Virus record (IMG/VR): IMGVR_UViG_3300046808_001241
Span: 62,001 to 126,000 of that record
Length of the DNA: 64,000 nt
Reading direction: 5' to 3' (one strand)
Below the pieces are notes generated by a model. That model had not been told where the DNA came from and made no database searches. It saw only the letters and a list, made by a program, of their open reading frames with translations. Every line of letters begins with the position of its first letter. Position 1 is the first letter of the stretch. Of the stretch, positions 8,003 through 53,046 are shown in pieces. The position numbers were made by a program, and so were the translations under genes.

Positions 8003-8027
8003 TCCAAAAAACATTAAATAAATATAT

Positions 8028-10148
8028 ATGGCAAGAACTATTACATCACCCGGCGTACAGATTACCGAAAAGGATCTTTCTTTAAGAATTGAAACTCCTG
8101 CTGGAACAAACGTTATTGTTCCTGGGTTTGCTACTCAAGGTCCAATTTCTGAACCACTTTTCATTACAACAGCAAGCGAGCTTGAAGCAATTTACGGCAT
8201 TCCCACGACACCTGCAGAGCGTTACTTTTATTATTCTTGCAAAGAAGTTTTAAATTCACCTGCAGTACTTACAACGTTGCGTTTGCCATATGGTGCTGAT
8301 ACAGGTTCTGCTTATTCCAAATCTTATAGCGCTCTATTTTACCCAATGCTTTCTTCGAGCGCTAATCCTTCAGTTTCAGCTGAATGGGAAATCGGAGCTC
8401 CGACTCATGTTTCGTTAACTCCTTCGCAATATACAAAAATCGTAGAAGGAAACTTTATTTGGACTGGAACAGAAGATGCTTTAGTCAGCAATTTAAGTGC
8501 AGACGCAGAAGTTTCAGCAGGTTTTATTATTTTAAACGACCTTCAAACGACAGTTAATGAAGTTGCAGAAGGATATTACATAGGGTTTGCTGATAACAAA
8601 TCGGTGTCTACGTCATCGCCAAATTTTGAATCAATCTTAGCAGTAACCACTCTTTCGGGAGATAATAACTATTTAAATGTAGCTACATCCCGTTTCGATT
8701 TCGCTTTATCGGCAACGGTTGATGACTCAAACAGAGGACTTCTTTCAATTTCAGAAACCCTCGAAAAGGTTGGATTTATTGGATTTGAAACAACCGAATA
8801 TCAAGACCATCTTTCTTTAGGCGTCTTCCGCGTTCGTAGATCCACTGCCGATTCTTCCCTTCTTTCACTTGCTACTACAGAAAAATATCTCGGCTCATTT
8901 GATTCAAACAGAAAGCAAGTCAGTCCAACAGGAGGAATTTTAGCCTCTTCGTTTATTGAAGATAAAATCAACAGCGCTTCTCCAACAATTAAAATTGTAA
9001 TAAACCCAACTATTTCAAAAAACTTTGATTGGACAACTAACTCAACCCTTCCTACTTCACGTGTAACCGTTGCAGACGATGCAAAAGGACTTTTCCCGGT
9101 TGGCGTATACGTTCCAGATAGCAGAATGGTTGAAGCAACAAAGATCATCGGCAACGTTCCAGGAAAACTTAACAAATCCTTAAGAACGCTTGAAACATTA
9201 GAAGATTCGGTAGTTGACGTCTTAGTAGATGGCGGATTATCGACAATTTACTCAGTAACTGAGTACGCTACATCTTTGTCATTTAATGATGAAACTTTCG
9301 TAGATTCTCCAAGTTCTGTACAACTCAATTGGCAAGCAGTTGCCAACGAACTTGTGAATTTTTCGCAAAATACACGCAAAGATTGTATGACTATCGTGGA
9401 TCCCGCAAGATCGATCTTTATTTCAGGCAGAGATTCAAAGGTAATTGATGGTGAAGACAAAACATTTACACTAGACATTTACAATCATTTAAGATCTTCC
9501 GTTGGAACATTTGAATCCAACTACGCAGCTACATATGGTAACTGGGTAAAAGTTCCAGACCTCTTTACTGGACGTAATATGTGGATGCCATTTTCTGGTT
9601 ACGCAGCAGCAATTTATGCAAGAAGCGATGCAGCAGCAAATACATGGGCTGCTCCAGCTGGTTTGACAAGAGGAGTGTTCAATGTACTTGATATTGCGTT
9701 CAACCCAAATCAAAAACAACGCGATCGCTTATATGAAATTTCAGTCAACCCTGTAGTTTTCTTTACAAACGAAGGCTTTTCTGTAATGGGTCAAAAGACC
9801 CTTCAAACTCGCCCAACTGCATTCGATAGAATTAACGTACGCAGATTGTTTCTAACTTTGGAAAGAGCCGTGCAAAGAACGTTAAAGTACTTTGTATTCG
9901 AACCCAATACAGATTTTACTCGTAACAGACTCAAGAACACAATTACTCCAATTTTCGAGTACGCTAAAAACACTGAAGGTCTTTATGATTATTTGATTGT
10001 TTGTGATGAAAGAAACAACACTCCAGATACAATTGATAACAACGAATTAATTGTCGATATTTACTTGAAGCCTGTAAGAACAGCAGAATTCTTGCTGGTA
10101 AACTTTATTGCAACTCGCACAGGACAAAACTTCCAAGAACTAATTTAA
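8028..10148 (+). CDS. gp18: tail sheath protein
   Basis: SPGVQITEKDLS start, W.APAGLTRG, VNPV..F..EG..V.GQKTL, RINVRRLF. Confidence 0.95.
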   Translation: MARTITSPGVQITEKDLSLRIETPAGTNVIVPGFATQGPISEPLFITTASELEAIYGIPTTPAERYFYYSCKEVLNSPAVLTTLRLPYGADTGSAYSKSYSALFYPMLSSSANPSVSAEWEIGAPTHVSLTPSQYTKIVEGNFIWTGTEDALVSNLSADAEVSAGFIILNDLQTTVNEVAEGYYIGFADNKSVSTSSPNFESILAVTTLSGDNNYLNVATSRFDFALSATVDDSNRGLLSISETLEKVGFIGFETTEYQDHLSLGVFRVRRSTADSSLLSLATTEKYLGSFDSNRKQVSPTGGILASSFIEDKINSASPTIKIVINPTISKNFDWTTNSTLPTSRVTVADDAKGLFPVGVYVPDSRMVEATKIIGNVPGKLNKSLRTLETLEDSVVDVLVDGGLSTIYSVTEYATSLSFNDETFVDSPSSVQLNWQAVANELVNFSQNTRKDCMTIVDPARSIFISGRDSKVIDGEDKTFTLDIYNHLRSSVGTFESNYAATYGNWVKVPDLFTGRNMWMPFSGYAAAIYARSDAAANTWAAPAGLTRGVFNVLDIAFNPNQKQRDRLYEISVNPVVFFTNEGFSVMGQKTLQTRPTAFDRINVRRLFLTLERAVQRTLKYFVFEPNTDFTRNRLKNTITPIFEYAKNTEGLYDYLIVCDERNNTPDTIDNNELIVDIYLKPVRTAEFLLVNFIATRTGQNFQELI

Positions 10149-17287: not shown

Positions 17288-20200
17288 TTAAATTAAAACA
17301 TACAATGTCCCAACTTCTTGCACTAAAGGTAGAGCAGAAACAGCAACGAGTTTTGTGATAGCACTAAGTCCTGGAGTAGCATTAGTAGTGTCGGTTTGTA
17401 CAAAGCTCGAAGAGGCGTTAGTAAACGTCGTGTAAGTAGATTCCCAGTTGGATGAAAGAGCTTTTAAGTCTGTTCCTTGGTAATTCCAAACCGTTGCTGA
17501 GTTTGTTTGAACCGTAGAATAAACAGAGTTCCAATCTGCAGAAGCGTTTTGCACTATTGTATTGACTTCTAAATTATCCGTATTTGTTAAACCAGAACCG
17601 TCTCCATAAAAAATTCCTGTGGCACTTACGTTTCCTGCAACCGTTAAAGCTTCGTTTGGAATTTCCGTATTAATGCCAACTGAGTTCGTCGCTCCGACGA
17701 AAAGTACAGACGTTCCAACTCCCGTTCCAGCATTAAATCCACCACTTACACTCAAAGTGTCAAGTATGGTTAAAGAAGACAATAAAACGTTGTTTGTCGA
17801 CAGGTAGTTTGTAACACTAGGAATTATTTCTGCAGTTTCTTCCCACGATGTACTCAAAGCATTAACAGTGTTAAAGGTGGACTGCCAATTAGCAGACAAG
17901 TCCTTAAGGTCCGTTCCTTGATAGCTCCATACTGTTGCTGAGTTTACTTGAACCGTGGTGTATACGTCATTCCAACTAGCAGATGTGCTTTGAACTATAG
18001 TATTGACGTTTAGGTCATCTGTATTTGTTAAACCAGAACCATCTCCATAAAAAACAGATGTAGCAGAAACAGAGCCAACAACAGTCAATGCCTCATTTGG
18101 AGTGTCTGTATTAATACCAATTTTTCCGCCATCTACAAACATGCTAACGCTTGTTCCGCCACCAACTTCCAATCCGCTCAAGGCAATGATAGATTCAAAG
18201 GCAGTTATGCTACCTACTACAGTCACATCTCCAGTAAGATTTCCTCCGGTTAATGGTAAAAAGCTTGAACGTACAAATGTGTGTATGTCTCCAAATTGCG
18301 TTTCTGTATAAGCAGACACTTGATCTAACTCAGTATTTACAGCCAAAAACTGAACATCAGAATAAGATGAAAGTCCATTGATTTTGACGTTGATACTAGA
18401 TAGTTGTTCTGCAGCAAAAGCAGATACTCCATCTAATTCTGTATTAACAGCTAAAAATTGAACATCGGAATAGGACGAAAGTCCGTCAATCTTGACATTA
18501 AGACTCGAGAGCTGAAATGCAGCAAAAGCAGATACTCCATCTAATTCTGTATTGATGTTTGTAAATTGATACTCTGCATATGAAGAGAGTTCATCGACTT
18601 TAGTATCAAGACTTGAGAGTTGAAATGCAGCAAAAGCAGATACTCCATCTAATTCTGTATTAACCTCTGAAAATTGATACTCTGCATATGAAGATACTGA
18701 ATCTAATTCGGTATTAATGTTTGTAAATTGACTTTCAGCATATGCTGATACAGATGTTAGAGAGTTTGTAAGAGCGCTTTCTACATTGTCTAAATTTGTT
18801 TGAAGAGTTGCTGATAAGGAGTCAGCATAACTCTTTGTGACAACGTCTTGAGCTGAAATTGGATTTAAAGCATTAACGATGAGATTGTTGCTCATGTTAA
18901 GCTGGTTGAGAATTACAGCTCCGTTAGAAGTAATTTCCTCAACAAATGTTCCATTTAAAGCATATAAACTTTCAGTGGAAGAAATTTGTCCAACCACTGT
19001 AAGCTTTTTGTTTGGATTAGATGTTCCAATGCCTACGTTAGTTCCGTCAGAATAAACATTGCTATCAATTACTGAACTATCAGTATCAAATTTTGGCAGA
19101 TAGTTTTGAGTTAGAGCTCCGCTTAAAAAGTTCGCAGTAGTATCCCAAATTTTAGAATTAATTGTTCTGGTTTGAAGAATGTTGTTAATATCATGTATTA
19201 CAACTGTATTAGTCGAGCCATTAGAAAGAGTTCCTATGATGGCTGATCCAGCAACATATAAATTTTCTGAAGCAGAAATTTCACCATTAACGGTAAAGTC
19301 TACGTTAGGAGTGCTTGTCTTTACGCCAACATTTGGATTATCACTATTGATTCCTCCGACGTGAAGAACCTCGACTCCCGCATCAATGTCATAAAAAGAA
19401 GCAATGTCTCCAGTTCCATCGTTTCCAATCCATGCAGCAGGACCTGACCCAATATGAACCACGCTTAAAGAACTAGTGGTTGCAAATACTGTGTTTGCAA
19501 AAGTAGATGTGCCAGTTGCAGTAAGATCTCCAAAAATTGTAACATTGCCAAAGAATTTTGAGCTTCCGTGCACAGTGAATGTATCTGTTGGACTGCTTGT
19601 ATTAATTCCAACAAAAACACCATCGTCATATATAATGCTGTTAACTAACGAACTATTAGAATCAAACTTCGGCAAATAATTTTGAGTTAGAGCTCCACTT
19701 AAAAAGTTAGCACTGGTATCCCAAACTCTTGAATTAATTTCTCGAGTTTTTAAAGTATTATTTGCATCCTTAATAATAACATCATTCGTTGTATCAGAAG
19801 GAATACTACCAAACGTAGCTGTTCCAGAAGAACTAATATTTTCACTAAGAGTTAAGCTACCTGTAACAAATTCTGCTCCTTCAATATACAAATCTCCAGT
19901 CGAGCTCAAGTTACCGACTATAGTCAAAGCCTCATTTGGAGTGGAAGTATTAATTCCGACGTTTGTCCCGTCAGAGTAAACGTTGCTATCAACCAATGTG
20001 CTGTCATTGTCAAATTTTGATAGATAATTTTGAGTCAGAGCTCCGGTCAATAGATTAGAAGTAGTGTCCCAAACTCTTGGATTGATTTCCCTAGTTTCTA
20101 AAGTGTTGTTGTCATCTTTTGTAATAACACTGTTTGTTAATCCTGTAAAAAGACTACTAATACTAACCGTGCCAGTAGAACTAACATTTTCAACAACGGT

Positions 20201-21274
20201 TAAATTTTGCTGAATGTATACACTTGAATCTACATGCACGTCTCCACTCGAACTTATATTTCCAACAACCGTTAGTGCTTCATTTGGACTTCCAGTAGCA
20301 ATGCCTACTCGACCAGCAGAATCAACAACAAAAGGCGTTTGAGCCGAGCTTGTAACAAAAACACTGTTCCCTGTACCCTCTTGAAAAACAGTTAAAGCTG
20401 CATCTTCTTTGTTGCTAATTACAGACAGAGAGCCATTTATAGTGGCAGTGTTTAGTGAAGACAAACTTCCGAGAACCGTATCAGAGTCAATTGTTAAATT
20501 TCCTGTAGCACTTGCACTGCCTACAATAGTTAGTTCTACATTTGGAGTATTAGTGTTAATGCCTACTAAATTGTTGGTAACATCAGCAAATAATACATCA
20601 GTATCAACCTCTAGATTGCCTTCAATTATATTACTTCCTGTAACATATACACTACCTGTAACAATTAAGTCTCCTACAGAGCTAATATTTCCAACAACAG
20701 TAAACTTTTCGTTCGGAGAATCAGTACCTAAACCAACATAGCCATTGTCTTGAAAAATAATATCATCTCCATTAATATCAATAAAATGAGCAATAGGCTC
20801 GTTGCCATATTGATTAACGGTTAAAGCAGGCCCAGTACCGTAATTTGTAATAGTCAATGCAGATCCAGCTACAACTGTGGTATCTAATTCAACTGCAGAT
20901 CCCAGTACAGTCAAATTCCCGTTTAAAATTAAATTTCCATCAACTGTGCTATTACCAGCAACACTTAAATTTTGTTGTACGGTTAAATTGCTGTTTAAAA
21001 AACTATTGCCGGCAACAGTTAAAGTTCCTGCAATCTGTGCATTGTTTTGTACAGATAGATCATTTGTAATTGATGCGTTTTCTGAAAAAATGCCTTTTTG
21101 AGCTGAAAGATTTTCAGTGGTTAGAATGTCTCCTTCAGAAAAAAATTCTCCTTGAAAAGGTTCCTCAAAAGAAGCTATTGGATCATAACTAGAATCATTG
21201 AACGAGTTATTTTTTGTCGTTCTTTTGCTATGATGGTTTTGTCTATGAAATTTATTGTGAAACCGGTTCGACAT
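17288..21274 (-). CDS. long tail fibre/adhesin-like protein (1328 aa)
   Basis: Many VGI.T.TPNEALTV.GNISS.G beta-repeats, duplicated modules, central coiled-coil repeats. Confidence 0.8.
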   Translation of the reverse strand: MSNRFHNKFHRQNHHSKRTTKNNSFNDSSYDPIASFEEPFQGEFFSEGDILTTENLSAQKGIFSENASITNDLSVQNNAQIAGTLTVAGNSFLNSNLTVQQNLSVAGNSTVDGNLILNGNLTVLGSAVELDTTVVAGSALTITNYGTGPALTVNQYGNEPIAHFIDINGDDIIFQDNGYVGLGTDSPNEKFTVVGNISSVGDLIVTGSVYVTGSNIIEGNLEVDTDVLFADVTNNLVGINTNTPNVELTIVGSASATGNLTIDSDTVLGSLSSLNTATINGSLSVISNKEDAALTVFQEGTGNSVFVTSSAQTPFVVDSAGRVGIATGSPNEALTVVGNISSSGDVHVDSSVYIQQNLTVVENVSSTGTVSISSLFTGLTNSVITKDDNNTLETREINPRVWDTTSNLLTGALTQNYLSKFDNDSTLVDSNVYSDGTNVGINTSTPNEALTIVGNLSSTGDLYIEGAEFVTGSLTLSENISSSGTATFGSIPSDTTNDVIIKDANNTLKTREINSRVWDTSANFLSGALTQNYLPKFDSNSSLVNSIIYDDGVFVGINTSSPTDTFTVHGSSKFFGNVTIFGDLTATGTSTFANTVFATTSSLSVVHIGSGPAAWIGNDGTGDIASFYDIDAGVEVLHVGGINSDNPNVGVKTSTPNVDFTVNGEISASENLYVAGSAIIGTLSNGSTNTVVIHDINNILQTRTINSKIWDTTANFLSGALTQNYLPKFDTDSSVIDSNVYSDGTNVGIGTSNPNKKLTVVGQISSTESLYALNGTFVEEITSNGAVILNQLNMSNNLIVNALNPISAQDVVTKSYADSLSATLQTNLDNVESALTNSLTSVSAYAESQFTNINTELDSVSSYAEYQFSEVNTELDGVSAFAAFQLSSLDTKVDELSSYAEYQFTNINTELDGVSAFAAFQLSSLNVKIDGLSSYSDVQFLAVNTELDGVSAFAAEQLSSINVKINGLSSYSDVQFLAVNTELDQVSAYTETQFGDIHTFVRSSFLPLTGGNLTGDVTVVGSITAFESIIALSGLEVGGGTSVSMFVDGGKIGINTDTPNEALTVVGSVSATSVFYGDGSGLTNTDDLNVNTIVQSTSASWNDVYTTVQVNSATVWSYQGTDLKDLSANWQSTFNTVNALSTSWEETAEIIPSVTNYLSTNNVLLSSLTILDTLSVSGGFNAGTGVGTSVLFVGATNSVGINTEIPNEALTVAGNVSATGIFYGDGSGLTNTDNLEVNTIVQNASADWNSVYSTVQTNSATVWNYQGTDLKALSSNWESTYTTFTNASSSFVQTDTTNATPGLSAITKLVAVSALPLVQEVGTLYVLI
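18295..18752 (-). repeat. about 8-9 tandem 54-nt (18-aa) intragenic repeats
   Basis: VSA(F/Y)A..Q(F/L)..(I/V)NTELD(G/S) units; DNA such as gcagcaaaagcagatactccatctaattctgtatt recurs. Confidence 0.8.
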
Positions 21275-21516: not shown

Positions 21517-23163
21517 TTGTTAAAAATGGCTACATTTAATGCTAAATCAGAAAGCGAAGCTATAGCAAGCGGAGAGCTTAAACCATACATTCAAAAATAT
21601 GGAAAAGAAGGAGCATATGACGTATATGCCGCAGAACAATTTGCAAAACAAGAATTTGCAACAAAAGGAGAAAAGGAAGCAGCTTCTAATACAAGTGCAT
21701 TGGTAGCTAAACAAGCTCTAAGAAATGCAATAGCCTCCAGTCAAGGCAAGAGAAAAGAATGGTATATAAAACTTCTACAATCTTTAGATAATACAGCCTC
21801 AGCAACCGGAGACGCATTTGAGGGATTGGACAAATATACTATCAATGCTATTAAAAATTTACATTCCGTTCATACATTTATACAGGATGGAATAACATCT
21901 ACTACGTCCGGAATAGCCGGTAGCATTAATAATGCTACTAGAGGGTTACAACAATTTGAAGAGGAGGCAATTCATGACATCCAGGGTTGGGGAGCTGGTG
22001 TTAAAAAAGCATTAGAACCAGTTGGATTGTGTTCTGCAATAGGAGATTTAACTGACGTTGCTAAAAACCCTCTTGGCGCTCCTCAATTTTTAGCAAATTC
22101 GCTTACGTCATTGGTTGGCAAAATTAGTCCGTCTTTCGTTCAAAAGATGGACGATAGTTTTACTTCATTAAAGTTGGAAGGCTTAGCACATCTTCCTAGC
22201 AAAATGATGGGAAGTATTAGAAGTTTAGCAACAGCTGCAGACGCAATATTGTCAGTGCCATTCGAAATCATGTCAGATGTTTATAATGGACTAATGGATA
22301 TTCTTGAAGCAATTGCTGATTTAATCGACGGTCTTGTAACATTAGTGATGAATTTAGCAATGTCTGTTGTTAAAGCTTTAGTCGATGCGATTATTCCCGT
22401 CGAGGAGCTTTTAGAATTCTTTTCTGCGGTAGGAGATCTAGCTTCATTTGTAGGAGACATAGCAGGAATGGTCGGAGGTTTCAGTGCAGTAACAAACATA
22501 ACAAGCCAAGTTACAGACATTGCTTCTAGCGCAACTTCACTAATCAACAATCCGTTACAACTTATACCAGGAGCAAATCAAGCAATTGGCCAAGTTACTG
22601 GATCGGTGGGTCAAATAACAGGAGCTCTAAGGAACCCCGAACAGTTCTTGCCTCCAGAAATCAGTCAACAAATGCAAAAAATTTCACAAATTCCTGGACT
22701 AGGGTTTGTTGGAAACTTGGGGTATAGTGTCGGAGATGCTCTAGACACTTTATCAGATGGTGTGTTTGAAGCAGCTCTTGGCAAATATGCTGACAAATCT
22801 CCAATGATCAAATCATTTTTTAATAAACCTCAAGACGAACCTCCAGCAGTAGATACACAAGAAGCTTATTCTGATGATTATGATCCACCAAAAGCAGGCA
22901 TTCATTCGCTTGACGGCGCTGGCAATCCTGCTATTGTTGATACAAGTTCTTATAAGATATTTAAGGAAGATGCTTCTCAACAAAACACAGACTCTGTATC
23001 AGCTTTTGGATTTACGGAACGCAAAAGAAATCCATCAGACCCAGTCGTTATAGAAGCATACGGAGCAAGAGAAGAACGTTTTTCTGATGGTTCTTCGGTG
23101 ATTACTGCTCCAAACGGACAACGTGTCAGAAGATTTCCGGATGGACGAGAAGTTGCTATCTAA
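21517..23163 (+). CDS. Ala/Gly-rich helical virion protein (baseplate hub or tape-measure-like)
   Basis: Amphipathic A/G/I/V-rich helices; upstream of the gp5-like gene. Confidence 0.5.
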   Translation: MLKMATFNAKSESEAIASGELKPYIQKYGKEGAYDVYAAEQFAKQEFATKGEKEAASNTSALVAKQALRNAIASSQGKRKEWYIKLLQSLDNTASATGDAFEGLDKYTINAIKNLHSVHTFIQDGITSTTSGIAGSINNATRGLQQFEEEAIHDIQGWGAGVKKALEPVGLCSAIGDLTDVAKNPLGAPQFLANSLTSLVGKISPSFVQKMDDSFTSLKLEGLAHLPSKMMGSIRSLATAADAILSVPFEIMSDVYNGLMDILEAIADLIDGLVTLVMNLAMSVVKALVDAIIPVEELLEFFSAVGDLASFVGDIAGMVGGFSAVTNITSQVTDIASSATSLINNPLQLIPGANQAIGQVTGSVGQITGALRNPEQFLPPEISQQMQKISQIPGLGFVGNLGYSVGDALDTLSDGVFEAALGKYADKSPMIKSFFNKPQDEPPAVDTQEAYSDDYDPPKAGIHSLDGAGNPAIVDTSSYKIFKEDASQQNTDSVSAFGFTERKRNPSDPVVIEAYGAREERFSDGSSVITAPNGQRVRRFPDGREVAI

Positions 23164-25458: not shown

Positions 25459-26925
25459 ATGGCAATTTCCAACAACGAACAAAAGACTGTCAATCAACAA
25501 AAAGAGCAAGTTGCTAAAGAACAAGCCACTCAAACTCCGTCTTCACGTTCTTCAAATCAACGAGAGATTCAATGTCCTTTTTGTGCGCCACATGTTAAGA
25601 AAAAAGACGTAACCGGAGGAAGATCAGAAATTGTTATTCCGTTTTTTGACCCTCCGTTAAGAATTCCAATTCCTCCTTTTTTGACAAAAACCATCAAACC
25701 GGACCCTCAAAAATGCACTTGTGAAGGTAAACAAAAATTTAAAGATGTGTCTGACGATGTAGCTAAATATAATCAAGTAAAACAGCAAGCTCAAGCAAAT
25801 ATTGAAAAGTCGATTGAGCTCGAAGCTAAAATGGGCACGGGAGGAAACCGAACGACAGTCATTGAAAAAAGCGATACTCTAGTTGTAGGTTTAGGCTTCA
25901 ATAAAAATGTTTCTTATGAAACTATTCCTGAAGGACATTTTGCCCCTTCAAAATTAAATACTACAGATCCGGAAAATCTTGGTTTTGCTACAGGAGGAAA
26001 ATACAATGCAGTAGTTGGAAAACAAACTTCTGTCGGTTGGCCGAGCGCGGTCGGAAATTACAAAATAACTTGTGCCAACTCTTTTAATGTTACAGCTGGA
26101 GCAGGCGGTATAACATTAGACACAAAAGGACCTCTTACTTTTAATTCTGGTATTTTAAATTTAACCGGGCCTCAAGTAAACATTGGTAGTGCTAGTGGTC
26201 CTTTGACTCTTGAAGGAGATACGGTGAGCATCGGGGGCAAAACGATTACATTGACTCCGACTGATGCAAACGTTTTTGTTAAAGGAACGGTTAGCACTAC
26301 CGGAAACATTGTCGTAGGAGGGCAACTGCATGCTGAAACACTTTCTTTTTCCAAAGCTTCGTGTCCAGCAAAAGACAAAAGAACATCCACAAATGCTGGT
26401 AATCCAGACACAACCCAAACATCTCCAGCTGTTTGGGGAGGACCTCAAGTAAAGGCAATCACTTCCAGTGTGCTAGACATACAAATATATTTTCAAAATA
26501 TAATGACCAATTTTGAGACAGCTGCTATAAGCGTATTGTCTCCTTCTCAAATGACAAATTTAATGAATCGCATTGGAAACTTGGCAAAAAGCACCATTGT
26601 AATAGACTCCGCGATGATTACAGGCATCTGCATTACCCCAGCTGGTCCGGGCATTGTAATGAACTTTCCGCATGTGCACGGACTGCCTTCTTTGGTTCAT
26701 GATCACGGCATTAGGGTTCCTGATATTGATTGCGATAACTACTCCTCGCCTCAATCTTTAAGAGCAGCTGTTGTAAACGAAGCGCTTACTTCTAATGCTC
26801 CAGCCAAAAAGAAAACGACCACGCAAGAGCTCTTGAAATTTACAATGGCTATTCCCGGCAGTGTCAGTTCTTTTGCTGTAAACGCTCAGAAAAAGATATC
26901 TTGGGTTTTAAGTCACTTAAGTTAA
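25459..26925 (+). CDS. baseplate central spike, gp5 C-terminal beta-helix-like
   Basis: GGITL...G.L..., L.L.G..V beta-helix repeats; CPFC..CTC and HVH..HDH metal motifs. Confidence 0.6.
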   Translation: MAISNNEQKTVNQQKEQVAKEQATQTPSSRSSNQREIQCPFCAPHVKKKDVTGGRSEIVIPFFDPPLRIPIPPFLTKTIKPDPQKCTCEGKQKFKDVSDDVAKYNQVKQQAQANIEKSIELEAKMGTGGNRTTVIEKSDTLVVGLGFNKNVSYETIPEGHFAPSKLNTTDPENLGFATGGKYNAVVGKQTSVGWPSAVGNYKITCANSFNVTAGAGGITLDTKGPLTFNSGILNLTGPQVNIGSASGPLTLEGDTVSIGGKTITLTPTDANVFVKGTVSTTGNIVVGGQLHAETLSFSKASCPAKDKRTSTNAGNPDTTQTSPAVWGGPQVKAITSSVLDIQIYFQNIMTNFETAAISVLSPSQMTNLMNRIGNLAKSTIVIDSAMITGICITPAGPGIVMNFPHVHGLPSLVHDHGIRVPDIDCDNYSSPQSLRAAVVNEALTSNAPAKKKTTTQELLKFTMAIPGSVSSFAVNAQKKISWVLSHLS

Positions 26926-29127: not shown

Positions 29128-29242
29128 AATTTAAATAAAAAAGAAGCCGGCGCTTGCTGCTTCTTTGTTCCCTTTTTAAAATGTTCTGACAGTATTACTG
29201 ACATCGTAGTTACTTATCTGCAATTTGAATAAATAGTAATAT

Positions 29243-29512: not shown

Positions 29513-31093
29513 ATGGATTACCGCTTAAAATCTTTGTATGAGCAGATGCTTAGAGGAGAGACTGTTAAACAAAACTCTAAAGGGCAACCTAAAAATTTAA
29601 CAGAGGCCTATAAAAAAACAGTCTTAACAGAAAGAACAGCATTTTATGCAAAAGATATAGCTGCTGGAGAAGAAATTCCAAATATACAAGGGTTGGAAAA
29701 TTTAGGAGCAGTTGAAGAGCCTTTAAAAATAAAGCACACCATTGCCTCTCAATCCGTATTGCCTACTCTAGAAAAAGCAATGTCAAAAGAAATATCTGGG
29801 TGGGGAGCAATCAAAGGAGTTGATGTTGATCGCCTTGCAAAAGATTTCATTGTAGCTAAAGTGTCTGGTTCGGATTTGGAAAAAATTACCGCTCACAAAA
29901 AGGAATTGACAGCATTTGAGGAAGCAGTTACAAAACCAGTACCGTTCAATTTAGTAACCGTCATAACAACAGACATCAAAACAAAAACTGATGTAGAAGC
30001 AACTCCCGAAAGTTTGGGTATGATTTTTAAACGGTTGTTTGAAGAGGAGGGAACTATTTCAGGGACTGCAGTAGGAAAGGGAGAGTTGGCTATTTCGTTA
30101 TTTACAAATTGTTCTAAAGGAAAAACTGGAGACTTGCTGCTTCCTTCTGGAAGAACTATTGAAGTTAAAGGCAAAGGCGGAAGACTCGGCCCTGCTGAAC
30201 ATTCTCAGTCAAATACGGCTAGAGATTTAGCTCAATTTTTGCAAACAAAAAAATCTGATCAAAAACTCAATGTAGAAATGGTTCGGTTAAAAACTTCCAT
30301 TCGCAAATTTGCTAACGAATTAGAAAAAGAAGAATTATATTCACAAGTTTTTAATGACTCTTTAAAAGAAACGTTAAATCAAATTGCTGACAGCATAGAC
30401 AATCCAAAAATTTCCGAGTTTCTTCAGCAAAAAGGTTTTAAGGAAATTTACAGAGGGGGTTCAGCTTCTTCTGAGAAGATATACAACGATTTTACTAAAT
30501 TGGGATATTTGAAACCAAAGCCTCAAGACGTACCTACAGCTCCAATAGAAAAAGATTTTATAAAAACAATACAAGCAAAAATACGAAAATTTTTAACAGA
30601 TAAAGTATTTTTTAAAGGAAACGTTGAAAGAATTACAAGCAAGACCGTTGAACCTCAAGCTATAGCACAACAAACGTTTACCGTAGCTGTACAAAACTTT
30701 TTTCTAAACAATCTCGGATTAACCCCAGAAGAAGCAGCTGAAGCATTTTTATATACAAAATCCTATAATAAAGACGTTTCTCGATATTTGCCTGAAATTA
30801 AAGAATACTTTAGTAAGCATTACGCTTCAATGACGGAAGGAGACTCGACTTATTTAAAAGCAGCTATTTTTGCATTCCAACTAACTCTTTACGCTCATGC
30901 AGGAGAAGCAGGACAACATTTTGATTATTTTATGATTATGAATAATTCCTCTATGAACGCTCTTTCGTTGGATGTTAATAGAGAAAATTTATTTACATAT
31001 CTTGCTGCTGTTTATTTAAATAATACCGACAAAATTGAAATGTCGATTAGAGCTGATGGTAGACAGGGAGCATCTGCTGTTACTTTAAAATAG
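29513..31093 (+). CDS. large hypothetical protein with a PD-(D/E)xK-like motif
   Basis: VGKGELAI, GDL......IEVK motif. Confidence 0.55.
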   Translation: MDYRLKSLYEQMLRGETVKQNSKGQPKNLTEAYKKTVLTERTAFYAKDIAAGEEIPNIQGLENLGAVEEPLKIKHTIASQSVLPTLEKAMSKEISGWGAIKGVDVDRLAKDFIVAKVSGSDLEKITAHKKELTAFEEAVTKPVPFNLVTVITTDIKTKTDVEATPESLGMIFKRLFEEEGTISGTAVGKGELAISLFTNCSKGKTGDLLLPSGRTIEVKGKGGRLGPAEHSQSNTARDLAQFLQTKKSDQKLNVEMVRLKTSIRKFANELEKEELYSQVFNDSLKETLNQIADSIDNPKISEFLQQKGFKEIYRGGSASSEKIYNDFTKLGYLKPKPQDVPTAPIEKDFIKTIQAKIRKFLTDKVFFKGNVERITSKTVEPQAIAQQTFTVAVQNFFLNNLGLTPEEAAEAFLYTKSYNKDVSRYLPEIKEYFSKHYASMTEGDSTYLKAAIFAFQLTLYAHAGEAGQHFDYFMIMNNSSMNALSLDVNRENLFTYLAAVYLNNTDKIEMSIRADGRQGASAVTLK

Positions 31094-31131: not shown

Positions 31132-31659
31132 GTGAACATTTTTTGCACAAACACAGACCCAGTCATTTCCGCTCAAGAACTTTGTGATCAGCATTGCCGT
31201 TCTAAAATGCAAATTGAGTCAGCTATTCTTTTGCAGCATTGTTTTTCGAACGAAACTCTAAAGTCTGCTCCTCCTACCAAAAAAGGCACTCCTCGCAAAT
31301 CTGGGAAAGGTTACTTTAATCATCCTTGCTCGGTTTGGACGCGGGAATCTAAGGCAAATTTCGAGTGGTTAGTGGAGCATGCACTAGAAATGTTTAATGA
31401 GCGAGACTATCGCTGGCCAAGTTCCTCTGCACACTTTACAAAAACGTTTATCGAATGGTGCAGAGACAATATTGACAAAACTGATCACTGCAAAGGAACT
31501 AAGCTAACTCCTTTTGCTATTGCAATTAATCCTGAGTCTAAATGTAAGCAGATTAAAGGTTTTGACCAACTTCCAACAGTAGACAAATACAAACTATATA
31601 TTCAGCACGATAAGTCTTTCGCTACATGGTCAAAGCGTTCTAAGCCTTCTTGGTATTAG
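31132..31659 (+). CDS. denV: pyrimidine-dimer DNA glycosylase/endonuclease V-like protein
   Basis: MNIF.....P...A...CD.H..KM.IE...LL, HPC..W.R.S..NF.WL motifs. Confidence 0.7.
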   Translation: MNIFCTNTDPVISAQELCDQHCRSKMQIESAILLQHCFSNETLKSAPPTKKGTPRKSGKGYFNHPCSVWTRESKANFEWLVEHALEMFNERDYRWPSSSAHFTKTFIEWCRDNIDKTDHCKGTKLTPFAIAINPESKCKQIKGFDQLPTVDKYKLYIQHDKSFATWSKRSKPSWY

Positions 31660-31774
31660 ACTTTTTCTTTACGCAATTAGGAACTATTTTCTTGCCTTTT
31701 TTCTTTGTTCCCTTTTGCTCATACCCCTTCCAGCACTTTTCTAGTAACATATTCACGAGATTGTTAAACTTCAT
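31640..31774 (-). CDS. small basic protein with a CWKGY..VPNCV motif (44 aa, missing from the ORF track)
   Basis: MKFNNLVNMLLEKCWKGYEQKGTKKKGKKIVPNCVKKKSNTKKA; TAAATA-N5-ATG. Confidence 0.7.
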   Translation of the reverse strand: MKFNNLVNMLLEKCWKGYEQKGTKKKGKKIVPNCVKKKSNTKKA

Positions 31775-31779
31775 ACGCT

Positions 31780-31792
31780 TATTTAATAAATA
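31780..31792. promoter_or_regulatory. back-to-back late promoter motifs (tatttaataaata)
   Basis: TAAATA on each strand, each exactly 5 nt from a divergent ATG (31774 on -, 31798 on +). Confidence 0.7.
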
Positions 31793-31797
31793 AGAAT

Positions 31798-33051
31798 ATG
31801 ATAGAAACTTCATTTAGAAGCTTTTTTGGACAAGCTTCTGAACAAATTATTTTAAAAGAACAAGCTGAGGGAGTATTAAAGCATCTTACTCACTTAGAAG
31901 AGCTCGTGTTGACATCTAAGAAGCAAGGGTTGGGAATTGCTATTCAATTTTTAAAAGAATTGTATGATGTGTTGAAGGGAAAGACGGACTCTACAACTTT
32001 CGTAACTGTCAAGTGGGATGGAGCTCCAAGCGCGATTGTGGGAATCAATCCAGAAAACAATCAATTTTTCGTATCAACAAAGAGTCTAGCCAACGTTAGT
32101 CCAAAAATTAACTACACAGAAGAAGATATTAACAAAAATCACGGACACGCTCCAGGCCTAGCAGAAAAATTAAAAATGGCTTTGAAGTATCTTCCTGCAG
32201 TTATTAAAGACGGAATTTATCAAGGAGACTTTTTATTTGATAAAAGAGACCTTAAACAACAAAATATTGACGGAGAAGACCTTATTTTATTCAAACCAAA
32301 CACGATTACATATGCTATTGATCAACACAGTGCTTTAGGACAAAGAATATCAAACGCTCAAATAGGAATTATTTTTCATACAAAATATACCGGAACCAGT
32401 TTACAGAATTTGAAAAAGGGTTCGGATGTTAGTGCATCCGAATTCAATCAAACGCAAGATGTTTTTGTTGATGATGCTAAATTCAAAGACATTTCCGGAT
32501 TAGCAACGTTTACAAAAGATGAGTCAGAGAAGTTTGAAACTCTTATTGATTCTTGTGAAACAGCCGGTAATAGAATTGGCTGGGAAGAAATTCCAGAAAA
32601 CGTTTATACAAATCTCAATACTTTTATTAATAGTTTGATTCGTCAAGGTAGATTTGTTCAAAAGCCTCAAGATGAGTTTAATAACTTTATTAAATGGATT
32701 AAAGAAAAGGGACAAAAAGCGGTTGATCTACTTAAAACAGAAAAAGGAAAACAAAAGAAGCAAGAAGCAGTTGACCAATTTGTTCAAATCATAGAACAAA
32801 GCCAAAACGACATCATAAACTTGTTTAATCTATCAAAAAAGCTCGAACAAGCAAAGATGTTGTTCATTAACAAATACAATTCTGCTGTTAAAACAAAACA
32901 ATTTTTAACTCAACCTGACGGATCTTTAAAAGTGACAGCTCCAGAAGGATATGTTGCTGTTGATCACTTAGGCAATATGGTAAAATTTGTATCCAGATTA
33001 GATTTTTCAGCAGCCAATTTTTCAGTTTCTAAAGGAGAAAAGTTTAAATGA
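31798..33051 (+). CDS. DUF6267-like protein with a ligase/nucleotidyltransferase motif I (KWDG)
   Basis: HLTHLEE, TVKWDGAP, FFVSTKS, QGDFLF, F.PNTITY, PEGYVA..K. Confidence 0.7.
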   Translation: MIETSFRSFFGQASEQIILKEQAEGVLKHLTHLEELVLTSKKQGLGIAIQFLKELYDVLKGKTDSTTFVTVKWDGAPSAIVGINPENNQFFVSTKSLANVSPKINYTEEDINKNHGHAPGLAEKLKMALKYLPAVIKDGIYQGDFLFDKRDLKQQNIDGEDLILFKPNTITYAIDQHSALGQRISNAQIGIIFHTKYTGTSLQNLKKGSDVSASEFNQTQDVFVDDAKFKDISGLATFTKDESEKFETLIDSCETAGNRIGWEEIPENVYTNLNTFINSLIRQGRFVQKPQDEFNNFIKWIKEKGQKAVDLLKTEKGKQKKQEAVDQFVQIIEQSQNDIINLFNLSKKLEQAKMLFINKYNSAVKTKQFLTQPDGSLKVTAPEGYVAVDHLGNMVKFVSRLDFSAANFSVSKGEKFK

Positions 33052-33656
33052 AAACCTTTCGCCAATTCTTTTTAGAGTCCATAAAAGATACAGTAGTGTT
33101 CGCATATGGTCGTTACAATCCTCCAACTGTTGGTCATATGAAGTTAATTGAAGCAGTCGTGAACGCTGCAAAGAAAAATAATTCTGATTATTTGATTGTG
33201 CCTTCCCACTCAACAAAACCATTAGATAAAAACCCTTTAACTGTAGATCAGAAGATCGAAATTCTGAAACACATGGTTCCCGACTCTGCAAAAGTATCTG
33301 CTTTTGGGTCGACATATATTAATACTCTTCAAAAGCTTCAAGAAATGGGCTTTCAAAACGTTATTCAGGTCTGTGGATCTGACAGAGAGCCAGAGTTTAA
33401 AAGACTGGTAGATATGTATAACGGAAAACCAGATAAAACGGGAAAAGTTCCATTTAATTTTCAATCATTTACTTTTATTTCTTCTGGAGACAGAGATCCA
33501 GATTCGGAAGGAGTAGAAGGAATGAGTGCTTCTAAACTGAGAAAATTAGCTATAGAAGGAAATGTGGACGAATTTAAACGTGGAATGGCTGATTCAGTTC
33601 CTGATGAGATTAAAACCAGCACTTATAATATTCTTAGAAAAATTCTTGCAAAATAA
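33048..33656 (+). CDS. HIGH-superfamily (cytidylyltransferase-like) nucleotidyltransferase
   Basis: GRYNPPTVGH, GSDR, RDPD.EG.EGMSASKLR. Confidence 0.85.
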   Translation: MKTFRQFFLESIKDTVVFAYGRYNPPTVGHMKLIEAVVNAAKKNNSDYLIVPSHSTKPLDKNPLTVDQKIEILKHMVPDSAKVSAFGSTYINTLQKLQEMGFQNVIQVCGSDREPEFKRLVDMYNGKPDKTGKVPFNFQSFTFISSGDRDPDSEGVEGMSASKLRKLAIEGNVDEFKRGMADSVPDEIKTSTYNILRKILAK

Positions 33657-33667
33657 TAAATAAACGT

Positions 33668-34522
33668 ATGACAAAAGAGTTTGATACATTATTAGAACAA
33701 ATGCTCAGTGAAATGATGCCTGCTGATATCGAAGGCATGGGCGGACTCGGAGGAGCTGTAAAGCAAGTTAAAGCTGGAGTTCCCGAAGGAGAACCAAAGG
33801 GCCATTGGGCTCCTCTTCAAAAATTAAGCCCTGAAGACAGAGACAAGGTTCTTGAGGAAATTTTTAAAGAAGTTTTTTCTGAAAAAGAAAATACATACGC
33901 TCCAACAGTAGATAATCCCGAAGATCTTCATGGAGCAATTCAATCAGCAATTCAATCCGTTTCCGGTAAGACTGGTTTAAAGGCTTCTGGAAAATGGGCA
34001 GCAAAGTTCTTAGCCGATCGTTTGATGACTCTTTTGAAAAACAACGTCAAATACACTACTTCGAGTGGTGTTGAGTCCCTTCAAAAAGAAATGACTCAAA
34101 AAGAATTCAAGCAAGCTCTCAAACAAGCTTTAGAAGAAGCTCCTGAAGCAGAGACTGCTACGGAAGAACCAGCAGCTGAACAAGCTCCAAAATCAAATGC
34201 AGAGATGGTTTACATGAAATCCGCTGATCTTAATTCAGATGATGCAGATCTCCAAAAAGCTTTTAACAAACTTCCAGCAGACAAAGAGATGTCATGGGAA
34301 GAGGTTTTAAAATCAGTCGGAATGACAAAAGGCCTTGCTTTAATCGACGCAGGCGGACTTACAGAAACAGAAAAAGAAGTTGAAGCTGGAGAAGAAGAGT
34401 ATGGTTCTGAGCAGAAAGAATTAGAACTAGACGACGAAGACGATGCCGACTTGTCTAAGTTCGATCGACTTATTGATCCGTACTTTAGAACAACTAAAGG
34501 TAGTTACGAGCTCCCAGATTGA
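33668..34522 (+). CDS. acidic hypothetical protein, probably virion
   Basis: TAAATA-N5-ATG; N-terminus FDTLLEQMLSE. Confidence 0.6.
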   Translation: MTKEFDTLLEQMLSEMMPADIEGMGGLGGAVKQVKAGVPEGEPKGHWAPLQKLSPEDRDKVLEEIFKEVFSEKENTYAPTVDNPEDLHGAIQSAIQSVSGKTGLKASGKWAAKFLADRLMTLLKNNVKYTTSSGVESLQKEMTQKEFKQALKQALEEAPEAETATEEPAAEQAPKSNAEMVYMKSADLNSDDADLQKAFNKLPADKEMSWEEVLKSVGMTKGLALIDAGGLTETEKEVEAGEEEYGSEQKELELDDEDDADLSKFDRLIDPYFRTTKGSYELPD

Positions 34523-48304: not shown

Positions 48305-49060
48305 ATGTCTTGCTTAATCAAAAACATTCCAAATAGTGCTAAAGTTCTTTATGGAACTGGTAACAAAGGTTTGTTCTTTCCTTTAGTTCCTATTTGCGAG
48401 ACTATTGATCAGCCGGAAGCTCCTCCTCCAGAAGAATGTTATCTTGCAGTAGAGTTGGGAAATCTGACATCAAATGCTTCTGATCCTTGTTATGGAACAC
48501 ACGAGAGAGTTTGGAACTGGGAATCAAATGTATGTGGCCATTCTTCAGACGTAGTTACTTGGGAGAATACTAATAACAATCAGTCTTTAGCAAAACAATG
48601 GATTGACTGCTTTGGAGATTATAACTTAGATTGGTCATGGAAGGAAAGAAAGTGTGCTTCCCTTGTACAAACAAAATGGAAAGATACAAAATGTTCTGCT
48701 TCTTATGCTAAAACATGGAAAGAAAGACCATTAATTTGTTTTGAAAAACATAATCTAGAGTGGCAATGGAAAGCAAGAGAGTGTACAGACAATTCAACAA
48801 CAATGGTTAAATGGAAGGATGCAGAGTGCTCTGGAACATATAACAAAAAATGGAAGTATGAAGCTCCAGACCCTGTAGAAGAATTGACAGACGACGAAAT
48901 TCTTTTAGAATTATTAAATCCAGTTACTGATAATGATTACAGAATTCAAGCTCCTTGCGTTGAAATTGATTTCTGTTATATTGCTTTAGAAGAAGATGGA
49001 GTAACATCAATTGATCAACAAGAAACAAATGATGTTTTCTTAACCGACTGCCTTGCATAA
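48305..49060 (+). CDS. Trp/Cys-repeat hypothetical virion protein
   Basis: Three W.W....C......W....C.....K.W units. Confidence 0.55.
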   Translation: MSCLIKNIPNSAKVLYGTGNKGLFFPLVPICETIDQPEAPPPEECYLAVELGNLTSNASDPCYGTHERVWNWESNVCGHSSDVVTWENTNNNQSLAKQWIDCFGDYNLDWSWKERKCASLVQTKWKDTKCSASYAKTWKERPLICFEKHNLEWQWKARECTDNSTTMVKWKDAECSGTYNKKWKYEAPDPVEELTDDEILLELLNPVTDNDYRIQAPCVEIDFCYIALEEDGVTSIDQQETNDVFLTDCLA

Positions 49061-49068
49061 ATAAAACT

Positions 49069-50940: not shown

Positions 50941-51129
50941 ATGAAACTTATTATCAAAAAAACAAACGATGAGCGTTGGGATTTTGTAGCCGATGCTCTT
51001 AAAGGCGAAACTGGTGTTATCACAGCAACTGAGATTAGAAACGGCATTGTCCACTACAACGCAAACTTTCCAGTATATGGTGGATTGTTTGTAGGAATTC
51101 CTGCTTCTGTTGTAGAAGTGGTTGAATAA
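50941..51129 (+). CDS. small hypothetical protein
   Basis: 62-aa operonic ORF. Confidence 0.5.
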   Translation: MKLIIKKTNDERWDFVADALKGETGVITATEIRNGIVHYNANFPVYGGLFVGIPASVVEVVE

Positions 51130-51137
51130 ATAACATC

Positions 51138-52313: not shown

Positions 52314-53046
52314 TCTTATGAAAACTTATATTGATCACGATTCTACAATTCATTTTGAAGGTCTTTGGATTCCAAAAGATCCCTCTAACAGACACTATGC
52401 TCAATTCCTGCAAGAAGTAACAGAAGGAAATGCTAAATTAATTCCTTATGTTCCTCCTGCTCCTACTTGGGAACAGATTAGAGCAAAAAGAGATGGTTTA
52501 TTAAAAGACTCTGATTGGGCTGTTGCAGGAGATGCTAATCCAAAGCCTTCCAAAGAAGCATGGCTAGCTTATCGTCAGACTCTAAGAGACATTCCTAGCA
52601 CTTTTAAAACTCCTGAAGAAGTAGTCTGGCCAAAGGTTCCTAATAAATAACATCATGGCTGGAGTAAAAATTTCCCAATTACAAGACGGAGGAGCTCTTC
52701 AACCAACAGATGCTTTTCCAGTAGCTCGTGGATCATTTACAAGAAAGATTGCTGGATCAGAGCTTTTAACTCCCACAAACTTTAATGTAGCAGATAGTCC
52801 AACAATAAATTTAAATTGGGATAGCACTACTAGGACTCTTTCTGCAGATGTTTCTACAGCTGTTAAAGAAGCTTCTGCTTTTAATGTAGTGGATAGCTCT
52901 ACTATTGACTTGAATTGGAATGCTTCTACAAGAACTCTTTCTGCTGATGTTTCTACAGCTGTTAAAGAAGCTTCTGCTTTTAATGTTGTAGATAGCTCTA
53001 CTATTGATTTAGACTGGAATGCTTCTACGAGGACTTTAAGTGCAGG
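51320..53046 (+). repeat. 99-nt (33-aa) repeats shared by two fibre genes (about 51320-51540 and 52780-53046)
   Basis: VVDS(S/P)TIDL(D/N)WNASTRTLSADVSTAV(K/R)(E/N)ASAFN; near-identical DNA. Confidence 0.85.
52318..52650 (+). CDS. tail fibre assembly chaperone
   Basis: IP.DP.N.HY, KRD.LL..SDW, AYRQ.LRDIP. Confidence 0.85.
   Translation: MKTYIDHDSTIHFEGLWIPKDPSNRHYAQFLQEVTEGNAKLIPYVPPAPTWEQIRAKRDGLLKDSDWAVAGDANPKPSKEAWLAYRQTLRDIPSTFKTPEEVVWPKVPNK

Follow-up and report, generated by a model that had tools for sequence, protein, structure and literature searches.

We analyzed a 64,000-nucleotide (nt) stretch of viral DNA, hereafter the window, which comprises bases 62001–126000 of IMG/VR record IMGVR_UViG_3300046808_001241. 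That virus record is complete, spans 217,182 bp and carries terminal repeats. The genome is that of a T4-like myovirus, in which we found a large terminase, a tail sheath, a baseplate-spike OB domain, gp15 and PhoH. Our subject is a pair of adjacent genes in the window. The first encodes a 417-amino acid (aa) protein of Pfam family DUF6267, and the second a 202-aa enzyme of the HIGH superfamily that resembles phosphopantetheine adenylyltransferase (PPAT) and nicotinamide mononucleotide adenylyltransferase (NMNAT). The two open reading frames (ORFs) meet at AAATGAAAA, where the ATG of the 202-aa gene overlaps the TGA of the 417-aa gene (ATGA), and a 138-bp gap ending in TTTAATAAATAAGAATATG lies 5′ of the DUF6267 gene. 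The layout is as follows, in window positions.

31785–31792, plus strand: AATAAATA, T4-type late-promoter-like motif (putative promoter), 5 nt before the DUF6267 ATG, within TTTAATAAATAAGAATATG
31798–33051, plus strand: DUF6267 gene, 417 aa, predicted ligase-like covalent nucleotidyltransferase fold (ORF and profile match)
33048–33656, plus strand: HIGH-superfamily adenylyltransferase gene, 202 aa, PPAT/NMNAT-like; its start overlaps the stop of the DUF6267 gene
33655–33662, plus strand: next AATAAATA motif, in the sequence AAATAATAAATAAACGTATG, 5 nt ahead of the start codon (ATG) of the next gene (284 aa, start at 33668); end of the two-gene unit

The 417-aa protein matched DUF6267 over its full length (E 2.9e-97) and also matched PHROG 455; neither family has an assigned function. 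DUF6267 had 2,247 cluster representatives at E ≤ 1e-3 and was found in viruses only, the best cultured relatives showing only 35–38% identity to our protein. A scan of prokaryote genome collections with a 12-sequence alignment as query returned 58 matches, almost all on aquatic contigs of metagenome-assembled genomes across many unrelated phyla; the same scan with the single 417-aa protein returned none. Because this range of phyla is implausibly wide, we read the ‘bacterial’ and ‘archaeal’ matches as phage contigs mis-binned with cells, which is the most likely origin of most of them. DUF6267 also occurred in the isolate assembly of Nonlabens xiamenensis 1Q3 (locus L135, 188,235-bp contig NZ_RMVE01000006.1), directly followed by a 357-aa protein with a transferase domain. 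We take that contig to be, most probably, a T4-like phage present in the flavobacterial culture, which would tie this phage group to a possible host.

An alignment of 106 DUF6267 homologues (33–85% identity) revealed positions that were invariant (H32, K72, D74, G75, P77, F90, K95, Y172, H194, E383, G384, K396, F403 and N407) and others that were conserved in at least 90% of the sequences (Q142, G143, D144, F165, P167, N168, T169, I170, V386, V398 and R400). These positions fall in the order expected for motifs I, Ia, III, IIIa, IV and V of the ligases: the alignment contains a KxDG with invariant lysine, followed by collinear candidates for motifs III, IIIa, IV (EGxV) and V. The putative motif V reads K-x-V-x-R instead of K-x-K. 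The most conserved peptide, FKPNTITY, served to retrieve 600 viral loci. The elements are located as follows.

31882–31899, plus strand: N-terminal HLTHLE element (H29, H32, E34); H32 invariant, H29 and E34 at least 90% conserved
32011–32022, plus strand: motif I, KWDG, residues 72–75, with K72 the predicted nucleotidyl-accepting lysine; K72, D74 and G75 invariant in the 106 homologues
32077–32085, plus strand: TKS element, candidate motif Ia; F90 and K95 invariant; pairs with K117-S118-K119 of T4 Rnl1 in a non-significant alignment
32221–32229, plus strand: QGD, candidate motif III, residues 142–144; at least 90% conserved, on model strand 140–148
32290–32313, plus strand: FKPNTITY, candidate motif IIIa, residues 165–172; Y172 invariant, F165, P167, N168, T169 and I170 at least 90% conserved
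32515–32886, plus strand: lysine-rich helical bundle of the predicted model, about 125 residues, between motifs IIIa and IV
32944–32997, plus strand: motifs IV and V, EGYVAV and then K396 and R400, residues 383–400; E383, G384 and K396 invariant

An AlphaFold2 model of the 417-aa protein, built on the homologue alignment, had a predicted local distance difference test score (pLDDT) of 90.4 and a predicted template modeling score of 0.85, and its core was predicted to take the fold of a nucleotidyltransferase (adenylyltransferase) domain. The bundle was modeled as five helices (240–258, 267–282, 290–311, 315–334 and 336–363), with block-mean pLDDT values of 94–98 over residues 241–360 and 87 over residues 361–370. 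Structural matches to this part were only helical-bundle chains, and it may serve in nucleic-acid binding. The model contained neither an OB domain nor a motif VI, and only two short helices stood at its C-terminal end; just 17 residues follow R400, the end of motif V, which leaves the protein without an OB domain. A Foldseek search of the PDB gave nothing below E 0.07 (no match at E ≤ 0.001), and its weak list consisted mostly of ligases. In a second structural ranking every match listed was a nucleic-acid ligase, with no capping enzyme or other transferase among the matches listed. The closest folds were those of RNA ligases, among them T4 Rnl1 and Trl1, a tRNA ligase. In the comparison with Rnl5-type ligases only the nucleotidyltransferase domain aligned (residues 142–339 of the Naegleria gruberi NgrRnl chain), and about 60 residues of DUF6267 precede motif I.

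At the sequence level, a Pfam scan of the 417-aa protein found no ligase family, neither PF09511 nor PF01068. The only alignment that recurred in hhalign comparisons paired PEGYVAVDHLGNMVKF of DUF6267 with IEGYVAVMKDGSHFKI of T4 Rnl1 (E227, G228, K240), in motifs IV–V. The spacing between these motifs is identical in the two proteins, in an alignment of 20 residues that was not significant (E 0.04–0.05). A weaker, sub-significant local alignment (E 0.5) set K72, D74, G75 and K95 against K99, D101, G102 and K119 of T4 Rnl1. Because no sequence or profile comparison was significant, superfamily membership rests on the predicted fold and the motif conservation, which indicate that the 417-aa protein very probably belongs to the covalent nucleotidyltransferase (ligase) superfamily. 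The resemblance could instead be superficial: DUF6267 would then be no nucleotidyltransferase but a protein of common alpha/beta arrangement in which a KxDG occurs by chance. We regard this as very unlikely, because chance would not fill the top ranks of two structural rankings with ligases alone, nor would the invariant residues then be precisely those of the ligase motifs, in order and with an Rnl1-like spacing from IV to V.

The 202-aa protein scored above the cut-offs of PF01467 and TIGR00125 and matched the PHROG ‘cytidyltransferase’ families 3041 and 395. It combined the signatures of the HIGH superfamily (PF01467) with a Rossmann-like fold, and both signatures were strongly conserved among 43 homologues.

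33108–33137, plus strand: GRYNPPTVGH, residues 21–30, nucleotide-binding (T/H)xGH signature; G21, R22 and H30 invariant, N24, P25, P26 and T27 at least 90% conserved
33525–33542, plus strand: SASKLR, residues 160–165, second signature of the ISxTxxR type; K163 and R165 invariant, S160, A161 and S162 at least 90% conserved

GSDR and SGxRDxD were further invariant elements, specific to this family. All substrate-specific NCBIfam models scored far below cut-off. This held for the equivalog models of the adenylyltransferases of nicotinamide mononucleotide (NMN) or nicotinic acid mononucleotide, covering NadD, NadM, NadR and archaeal NMNAT (TIGR00482, 21.5 vs 112; PRK01153, 18.8 vs 127; TIGR01527, 12.5 vs 181), and for the CoaD model TIGR01510 (13.3 bits vs 103). 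A profile search of the PDB with the transferase family gave PPAT as its best enzyme match (E 4e-4). Judged from its sequence, the 202-aa protein is an adenylyltransferase-type HIGH enzyme, PPAT- or NMNAT-like, to which no specific model assigns a substrate.

A preliminary description of this stretch had named the ATGA-overlapped pair and its KWDG, EG.V, K, TVGH and SAS motifs, and these are present as claimed, with the key residues invariant across homologues. Its view of the first protein as ligase-like agrees with the predicted fold and with a motif order typical of covalent-adenylate ligases, and its comparison of the partner with NMNAT or cytidylyltransferases fits a HIGH-superfamily adenylyltransferase of NMNAT- or PPAT-like type. 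It had also called the system uncharacterized; a literature search indeed yielded no paper on DUF6267, and no functional study of the transferase or of a cyanomyovirus RNA ligase.

One alternative is a role in the supply of nicotinamide adenine dinucleotide (NAD+) or in NAD+-dependent ligation. The 202-aa enzyme would then be an NMN adenylyltransferase that regenerates NAD+ from the NMN released by the ligase-like enzyme in a LigA-like transfer of AMP from NAD+, or that raises NAD+ against NAD+-depleting defenses. We consider this unlikely, because the PPAT profile matches were stronger than those to the NMNAT equivalogs, all far below cut-off, and because no LigA structure stood among the top structural matches of the 417-aa protein. 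Reconstitution of NAD+ by a pathway of the NAD+ reconstitution (NARP) type, which the preliminary description had brought up, requires either nicotinamide phosphoribosyltransferase (NAMPT) or Adps and Namat. NAMPT (PF04095) was not found in this genome or in phages P-HM1 and Melnitz (the NARP1 enzymes were not searched for), and the proposal thus found little support. One relative, Vibrio phage EniLVp02, does have NadV, and a NadM-like enzyme is encoded as a distinct protein at another place in that genome. Because NAMPT is absent here, and because the EniLVp02 NadV is paired with that different NadM-like protein, we concluded that a NARP2-type pathway is not present in our phage.

Several lines of evidence connect the two proteins. 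PHROG 455 covers both of them, and among the 150 best representatives seven were fusions of DUF6267 followed by the transferase (P0247, P0279, P0342, P0346, P0349, P0357 and P0379) and two were fusions in the reverse order (P0269 and P0372); further fusions had divergent transferase domains (P0243 and P0286). Fusion proteins reached 1,462 aa and carried further domains of no assigned function, such as DUF5824. This domain (PF19141) was fused to the transferase, or to DUF6267 plus transferase, as in P0279 (residues 644–760) and Melnitz gp18 (locus L002, 6583–8535); it was not found in this genome or in the literature searched. Four or more downstream genes were available at 52 IMG/VR loci; of these loci, the transferase was in the same gene or at most three genes downstream in 27, 9–13 genes downstream in seven, and not within 8 kb in 18. 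The corresponding counts for 30 independent genome-collection loci were 14 (same gene or at most three genes downstream), six (further downstream) and ten (not in the flank). Over the combined 82 loci, the transferase was thus in the same gene or at most three genes downstream in 41 and further downstream in 13, and it was never a separate gene upstream of DUF6267. Record counts for DUF6267 and the transferase in cultured phages were nearly equal (469 vs 546), the groups concerned being cyanophages, Prochlorococcus phages, Methylophilales phages and Pelagibacter phages. A structure prediction of the two-protein complex scored 0.00, a value that counts neither for nor against binding. Because natural fusions occur in both orders and adjacency is conserved, functional coupling of the DUF6267 protein and the transferase is supported.

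The genes around the pair in relatives point to a process in which the two might act. Upstream of DUF6267 we found DNA polymerase B, UvsX/RecA, gp41 helicase and a GC533-like gene, and in EniLVp02 the DUF6267 gene lies between gp41 helicase and gp61 primase. The commonest context of the pair in relatives is a replication/recombination block, not a late block, and glycosyltransferase-like genes often lie 3′ of it. Because the relatives’ pair lies in such a block, its most likely job is end-joining in phage DNA replication, recombination or repair. The explanation we favor, to which we would give a roughly even chance of being correct, is that the DUF6267 protein seals nicks as a polynucleotide ligase, belongs to a new family confined to viruses, and is coupled in these processes to a PPAT/NMNAT-like adenylyltransferase. 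This explanation is built on the gene structure, predicted fold, motif conservation, fusions and synteny, and it would entail adenylylation of the lysine, a polynucleotide substrate and a chemical link between the two enzymes.

In mechanistic terms, the two genes would form one translationally coupled unit. The first would encode a new branch, confined to viruses, of the covalent nucleotidyltransferase (ATP-dependent ligase) superfamily. Its build would be that of an RNA ligase: six motifs (I, Ia, III, IIIa, IV and V) on an adenylyltransferase core, the lysine-rich bundle inserted before motif IV, and an OB domain lacking. K72 would take AMP from ATP or another adenylyl donor, the AMP would be transferred to a 5′-phosphate end, and the nick would then be sealed in RNA, DNA or an RNA/DNA hybrid. 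The PPAT/NMNAT-type adenylyltransferase encoded by the second gene would act in the same pathway, making or recycling an adenylylated cofactor or intermediate for the ligase; NAD+ is one candidate.

A more specific proposal concerns cyanophages. Since 2005, T4-like cyanophages have been noted to lack recognizable DNA ligase and RNase H genes, with substitution by the host usually assumed; g30 and rnh homologues were not found in cyanomyoviruses, and distant homologues were left open (PMC2984593). We found no ligase of the PF01068, PF01653 or PF09414 families in P-HM1 or Melnitz, and in cyanomyoviruses, which are without T4-type DNA and RNA ligases, DUF6267 was the only ligase-fold protein seen. 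DUF6267 might be the ‘missing’ ligase both of cyanomyoviruses and of their T4-like relatives in aquatic habitats: a divergent RNA-ligase-like enzyme that seals Okazaki-fragment or recombination nicks at the replisome and depends on a dedicated PPAT/NMNAT-like adenylyltransferase for the supply or recycling of its adenylyl donor. We view this proposal as possible but doubtful. To our knowledge, no other ligase has an obligate adenylyltransferase partner.

Several observations weigh against a nick-sealing ligase with a coupled transferase. Searches of the PDB by phmmer and hmmsearch with the 417-aa protein or its profile gave no ligase match; matches that did appear, such as ribosomal eS8, were rejected as spurious products of low complexity in the helical insert. 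Comparisons by hhalign with the phage’s own PF01068 ligase, T4 Rnl2, T4 Rnl1 and an Rnl1 profile of 30 sequences, also run with the helical insert removed, gave probabilities of at most 2%. No transferase lay inside the available flank at 28 of the 82 loci, and in jumbo enterobacterial and Pseudomonas phages the transferase family occurs on its own, with no DUF6267-like gene among its neighbors in Pseudomonas phage Deifobo or Cronobacter phage GAP32. The pair’s neighbors in the window are late and tail genes, not replication genes. Canonical ATP-dependent DNA ligases also occur in such phages. This genome encodes one outside the window (381 aa; PF01068, E 7e-17; G000:C1:27338–27892, locus L004 1177–2322) and so has two ligase-fold proteins, EniLVp02 likewise has one, and Stenotrophomonas phage DLP6 has one (PMC5349666), although DLP6 is not confirmed as the DUF6267-carrying Stenotrophomonas record. 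Simple replacement of gp30 by DUF6267 is weakened by the canonical ligases of this genome and EniLVp02, and because of this co-occurrence DUF6267 is not simply the replicative ligase.

In the window the pair lies among late and tail genes, a short way upstream of gp15 and a tail-fiber-like gene, and because AATAAATA-N5-ATG precedes both the pair and the next gene, the pair looks like a discrete two-gene unit. ATAAATA occurred at most 40 nt upstream of 15 of the 85 window ORFs. Its commonest distance to the ATG was exactly 5 nt, and the 15 ORFs included the tail-sheath gene at 8028. Only 27 copies were present in the whole window on both strands, mostly as AATAAATA or GATAAATA.

ATAAATA examples: 8018–8024, 29229–29235, 31786–31792, 33656–33662, 49057–49063, 51126–51132 and 52643–52649

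From its sequence and placement, AATAAATA may be a T4-type late promoter-like element; if it is truly a T4-type late promoter, such short spacing would yield leaderless or nearly leaderless late mRNAs. The preliminary description had spoken of a late module, which is plausible here given the motif 5 nt before the ATG, but does not carry over to the relatives, in which the pair is mostly in a replication/recombination block. A freshwater RNA library contained exact contigs inside both genes (32145–32312 and 33454–33620) and inside the next two genes downstream; these are weakly compatible with transcription of the pair, as DNA carry-over is possible and neither strand nor transcript ends are shown.

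A late-type promoter motif before the unit would suit RNA break repair as a counter-defense, in which the ligase would reseal tRNA or mRNA after cleavage by host anticodon nucleases or by other RNases, supported by its partner and perhaps delivered in the virion. The closest folds, RNA ligases including T4 Rnl1 and Trl1, point the same way, as does the lack of an OB domain, a trait of RNA ligases. A cyanophage homologue of the transferase was moreover detected in a virion proteome, but this evidence, on which the earlier suggestion of injection depends, consists of three cytidylyltransferase peptides that the authors of that study considered possible contamination (PMC10665884). The relatives’ synteny with replisome genes also speaks against such a role. 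Repair of anticodon-nuclease-cut tRNA requires end-healing enzymes, but searches of this genome, P-HM1 and Melnitz revealed no homologue of T4 PseT/Pnkp or of Tpt1/KptA, nor any ligase of the Rnl2 family. Because PseT/Pnkp and Tpt1 were not found, a T4-style tRNA repair pathway, which the preliminary description had envisaged, is incomplete. Because no end-healing partner was found, RNase-cut ends (2′,3′-cyclic phosphate and 5′-OH) would not be sealable by a classical ligase. We thus consider RNA break repair improbable.

The position of the pair just upstream of gp15 and the tail-fiber-like gene, with a common promoter-like motif, is also what might be expected if the DUF6267 protein were not a polynucleotide ligase. 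It would instead use a Lys-NMP intermediate to modify a protein or small molecule, or would moonlight in virion assembly, much as T4 gp63/Rnl1 acts in tail-fiber attachment. The joint product of this enzyme and the HIGH transferase would be a nucleotide-linked compound or modification. The glycosyltransferase-like genes often found 3′ of the pair in relatives, and the long fusions with domains such as DUF5824, could be explained in the same way. In contrast, the second structural ranking contained nucleic-acid ligases in all rows listed, the fully conserved motifs IV and V indicate ligase-type chemistry, and replication is the commonest context in relatives. We therefore hold a role outside polynucleotide joining to be distinctly unlikely, and a nick-sealing ligase remains the explanation that we favor.

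Other genes near the pair were also inspected. Immediately 5′ of the gap lies a GTG-started gene (31132–31659, plus strand) for a 175-aa protein that matched PHROG 624, ‘DNA binding protein’ (E 1e-34), and no Pfam family. Two genes upstream of DUF6267, a 526-aa ORF (29513–31093, plus strand) had no Pfam, PHROG or NCBIfam match. Its position is approximately that of the GC533-like gene in cyanophages, but homology to that gene was rejected as not significant (E 0.11); by eye, a GDxxx...EVKG stretch in it is reminiscent of PD-(D/E)xK nucleases. Three large ORFs near the baseplate and tail genes had no Pfam match at E ≤ 0.001: 17288–21274 (minus strand, 1,328 aa), 21517–23163 (plus strand, 548 aa) and 25459–26925 (plus strand, 488 aa). 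A roughly 370-aa protein encoded at 15 related loci, in most of them one or two genes upstream of DUF6267 (e.g., locus L060, 6110–7222, cluster 7), matched the Druantia DruA family (PF14236, E 6e-10). Public sequencing runs containing the stretch 31700–33700 were labeled mostly as freshwater, lake or estuary metagenomes, and for this reason we take the phage to be a freshwater relative of marine cyanophage-like myoviruses.

T4-like cyanophages are among the most abundant ocean viruses. A ligase-fold protein that is conserved in cyanophages, beside helicase and recombinase genes, makes the missing-ligase question directly testable. If confirmed as a ligase, DUF6267 would add a large virus-only family to the ligase superfamily, with an unusual domain layout and a repeatedly fused adenylyltransferase partner. 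Interest in such enzymes extends from nucleic-acid enzymology to their use as molecular-biology tools. Should the pair prove to be counter-defensive or NAD+-linked, it would represent a new kind of phage-host conflict module.

Comparison with known systems shows how far the pair departs from each. The 202-aa protein fell far below all equivalog cut-offs for CoaD, NadM, archaeal NMNAT and NadD; it is about 40 residues longer than PPAT and has its own invariant GSDR and SGxRDxD. The pair is like NARP1 (Adps and Namat) and NARP2 (NAMPT and NMNAT) in being phage-encoded with one component that is possibly NMNAT-like, but the partner is a phosphoribosyltransferase in those systems and a ligase-fold protein here, where NAMPT is absent. 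ATP-dependent DNA ligases (T4 gp30, T7, Chlorella virus and human Lig1; PF01068) have an OB domain and motif VI, whereas DUF6267 is without both and without a PF01068 match, and the phage’s own canonical PF01068 ligase has no profile similarity to it. With T4 Rnl1 (gp63/RnlA, PF09511) and the ligase domain of fungal Trl1 there is no PF09511 match, and the hhalign probability for Rnl1 was about 1%. T4 Rnl1 works with Pnkp, which was not found in this genome, and its helical domain is C-terminal, whereas that of DUF6267 is inserted (residues 240–363). Rnl5-type nick-sealing RNA ligases (NgrRnl, PDB 5cot/6vt3, and DraRnl of Deinococcus) are among the closest known systems, albeit at only 12% identity and with no sequence-level signal. 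The N-terminal domain of NgrRnl has no counterpart in DUF6267, which differs further in the helical insertion (about 125 residues) that precedes its motif IV and in the conserved HxxHxE that precedes motif I.

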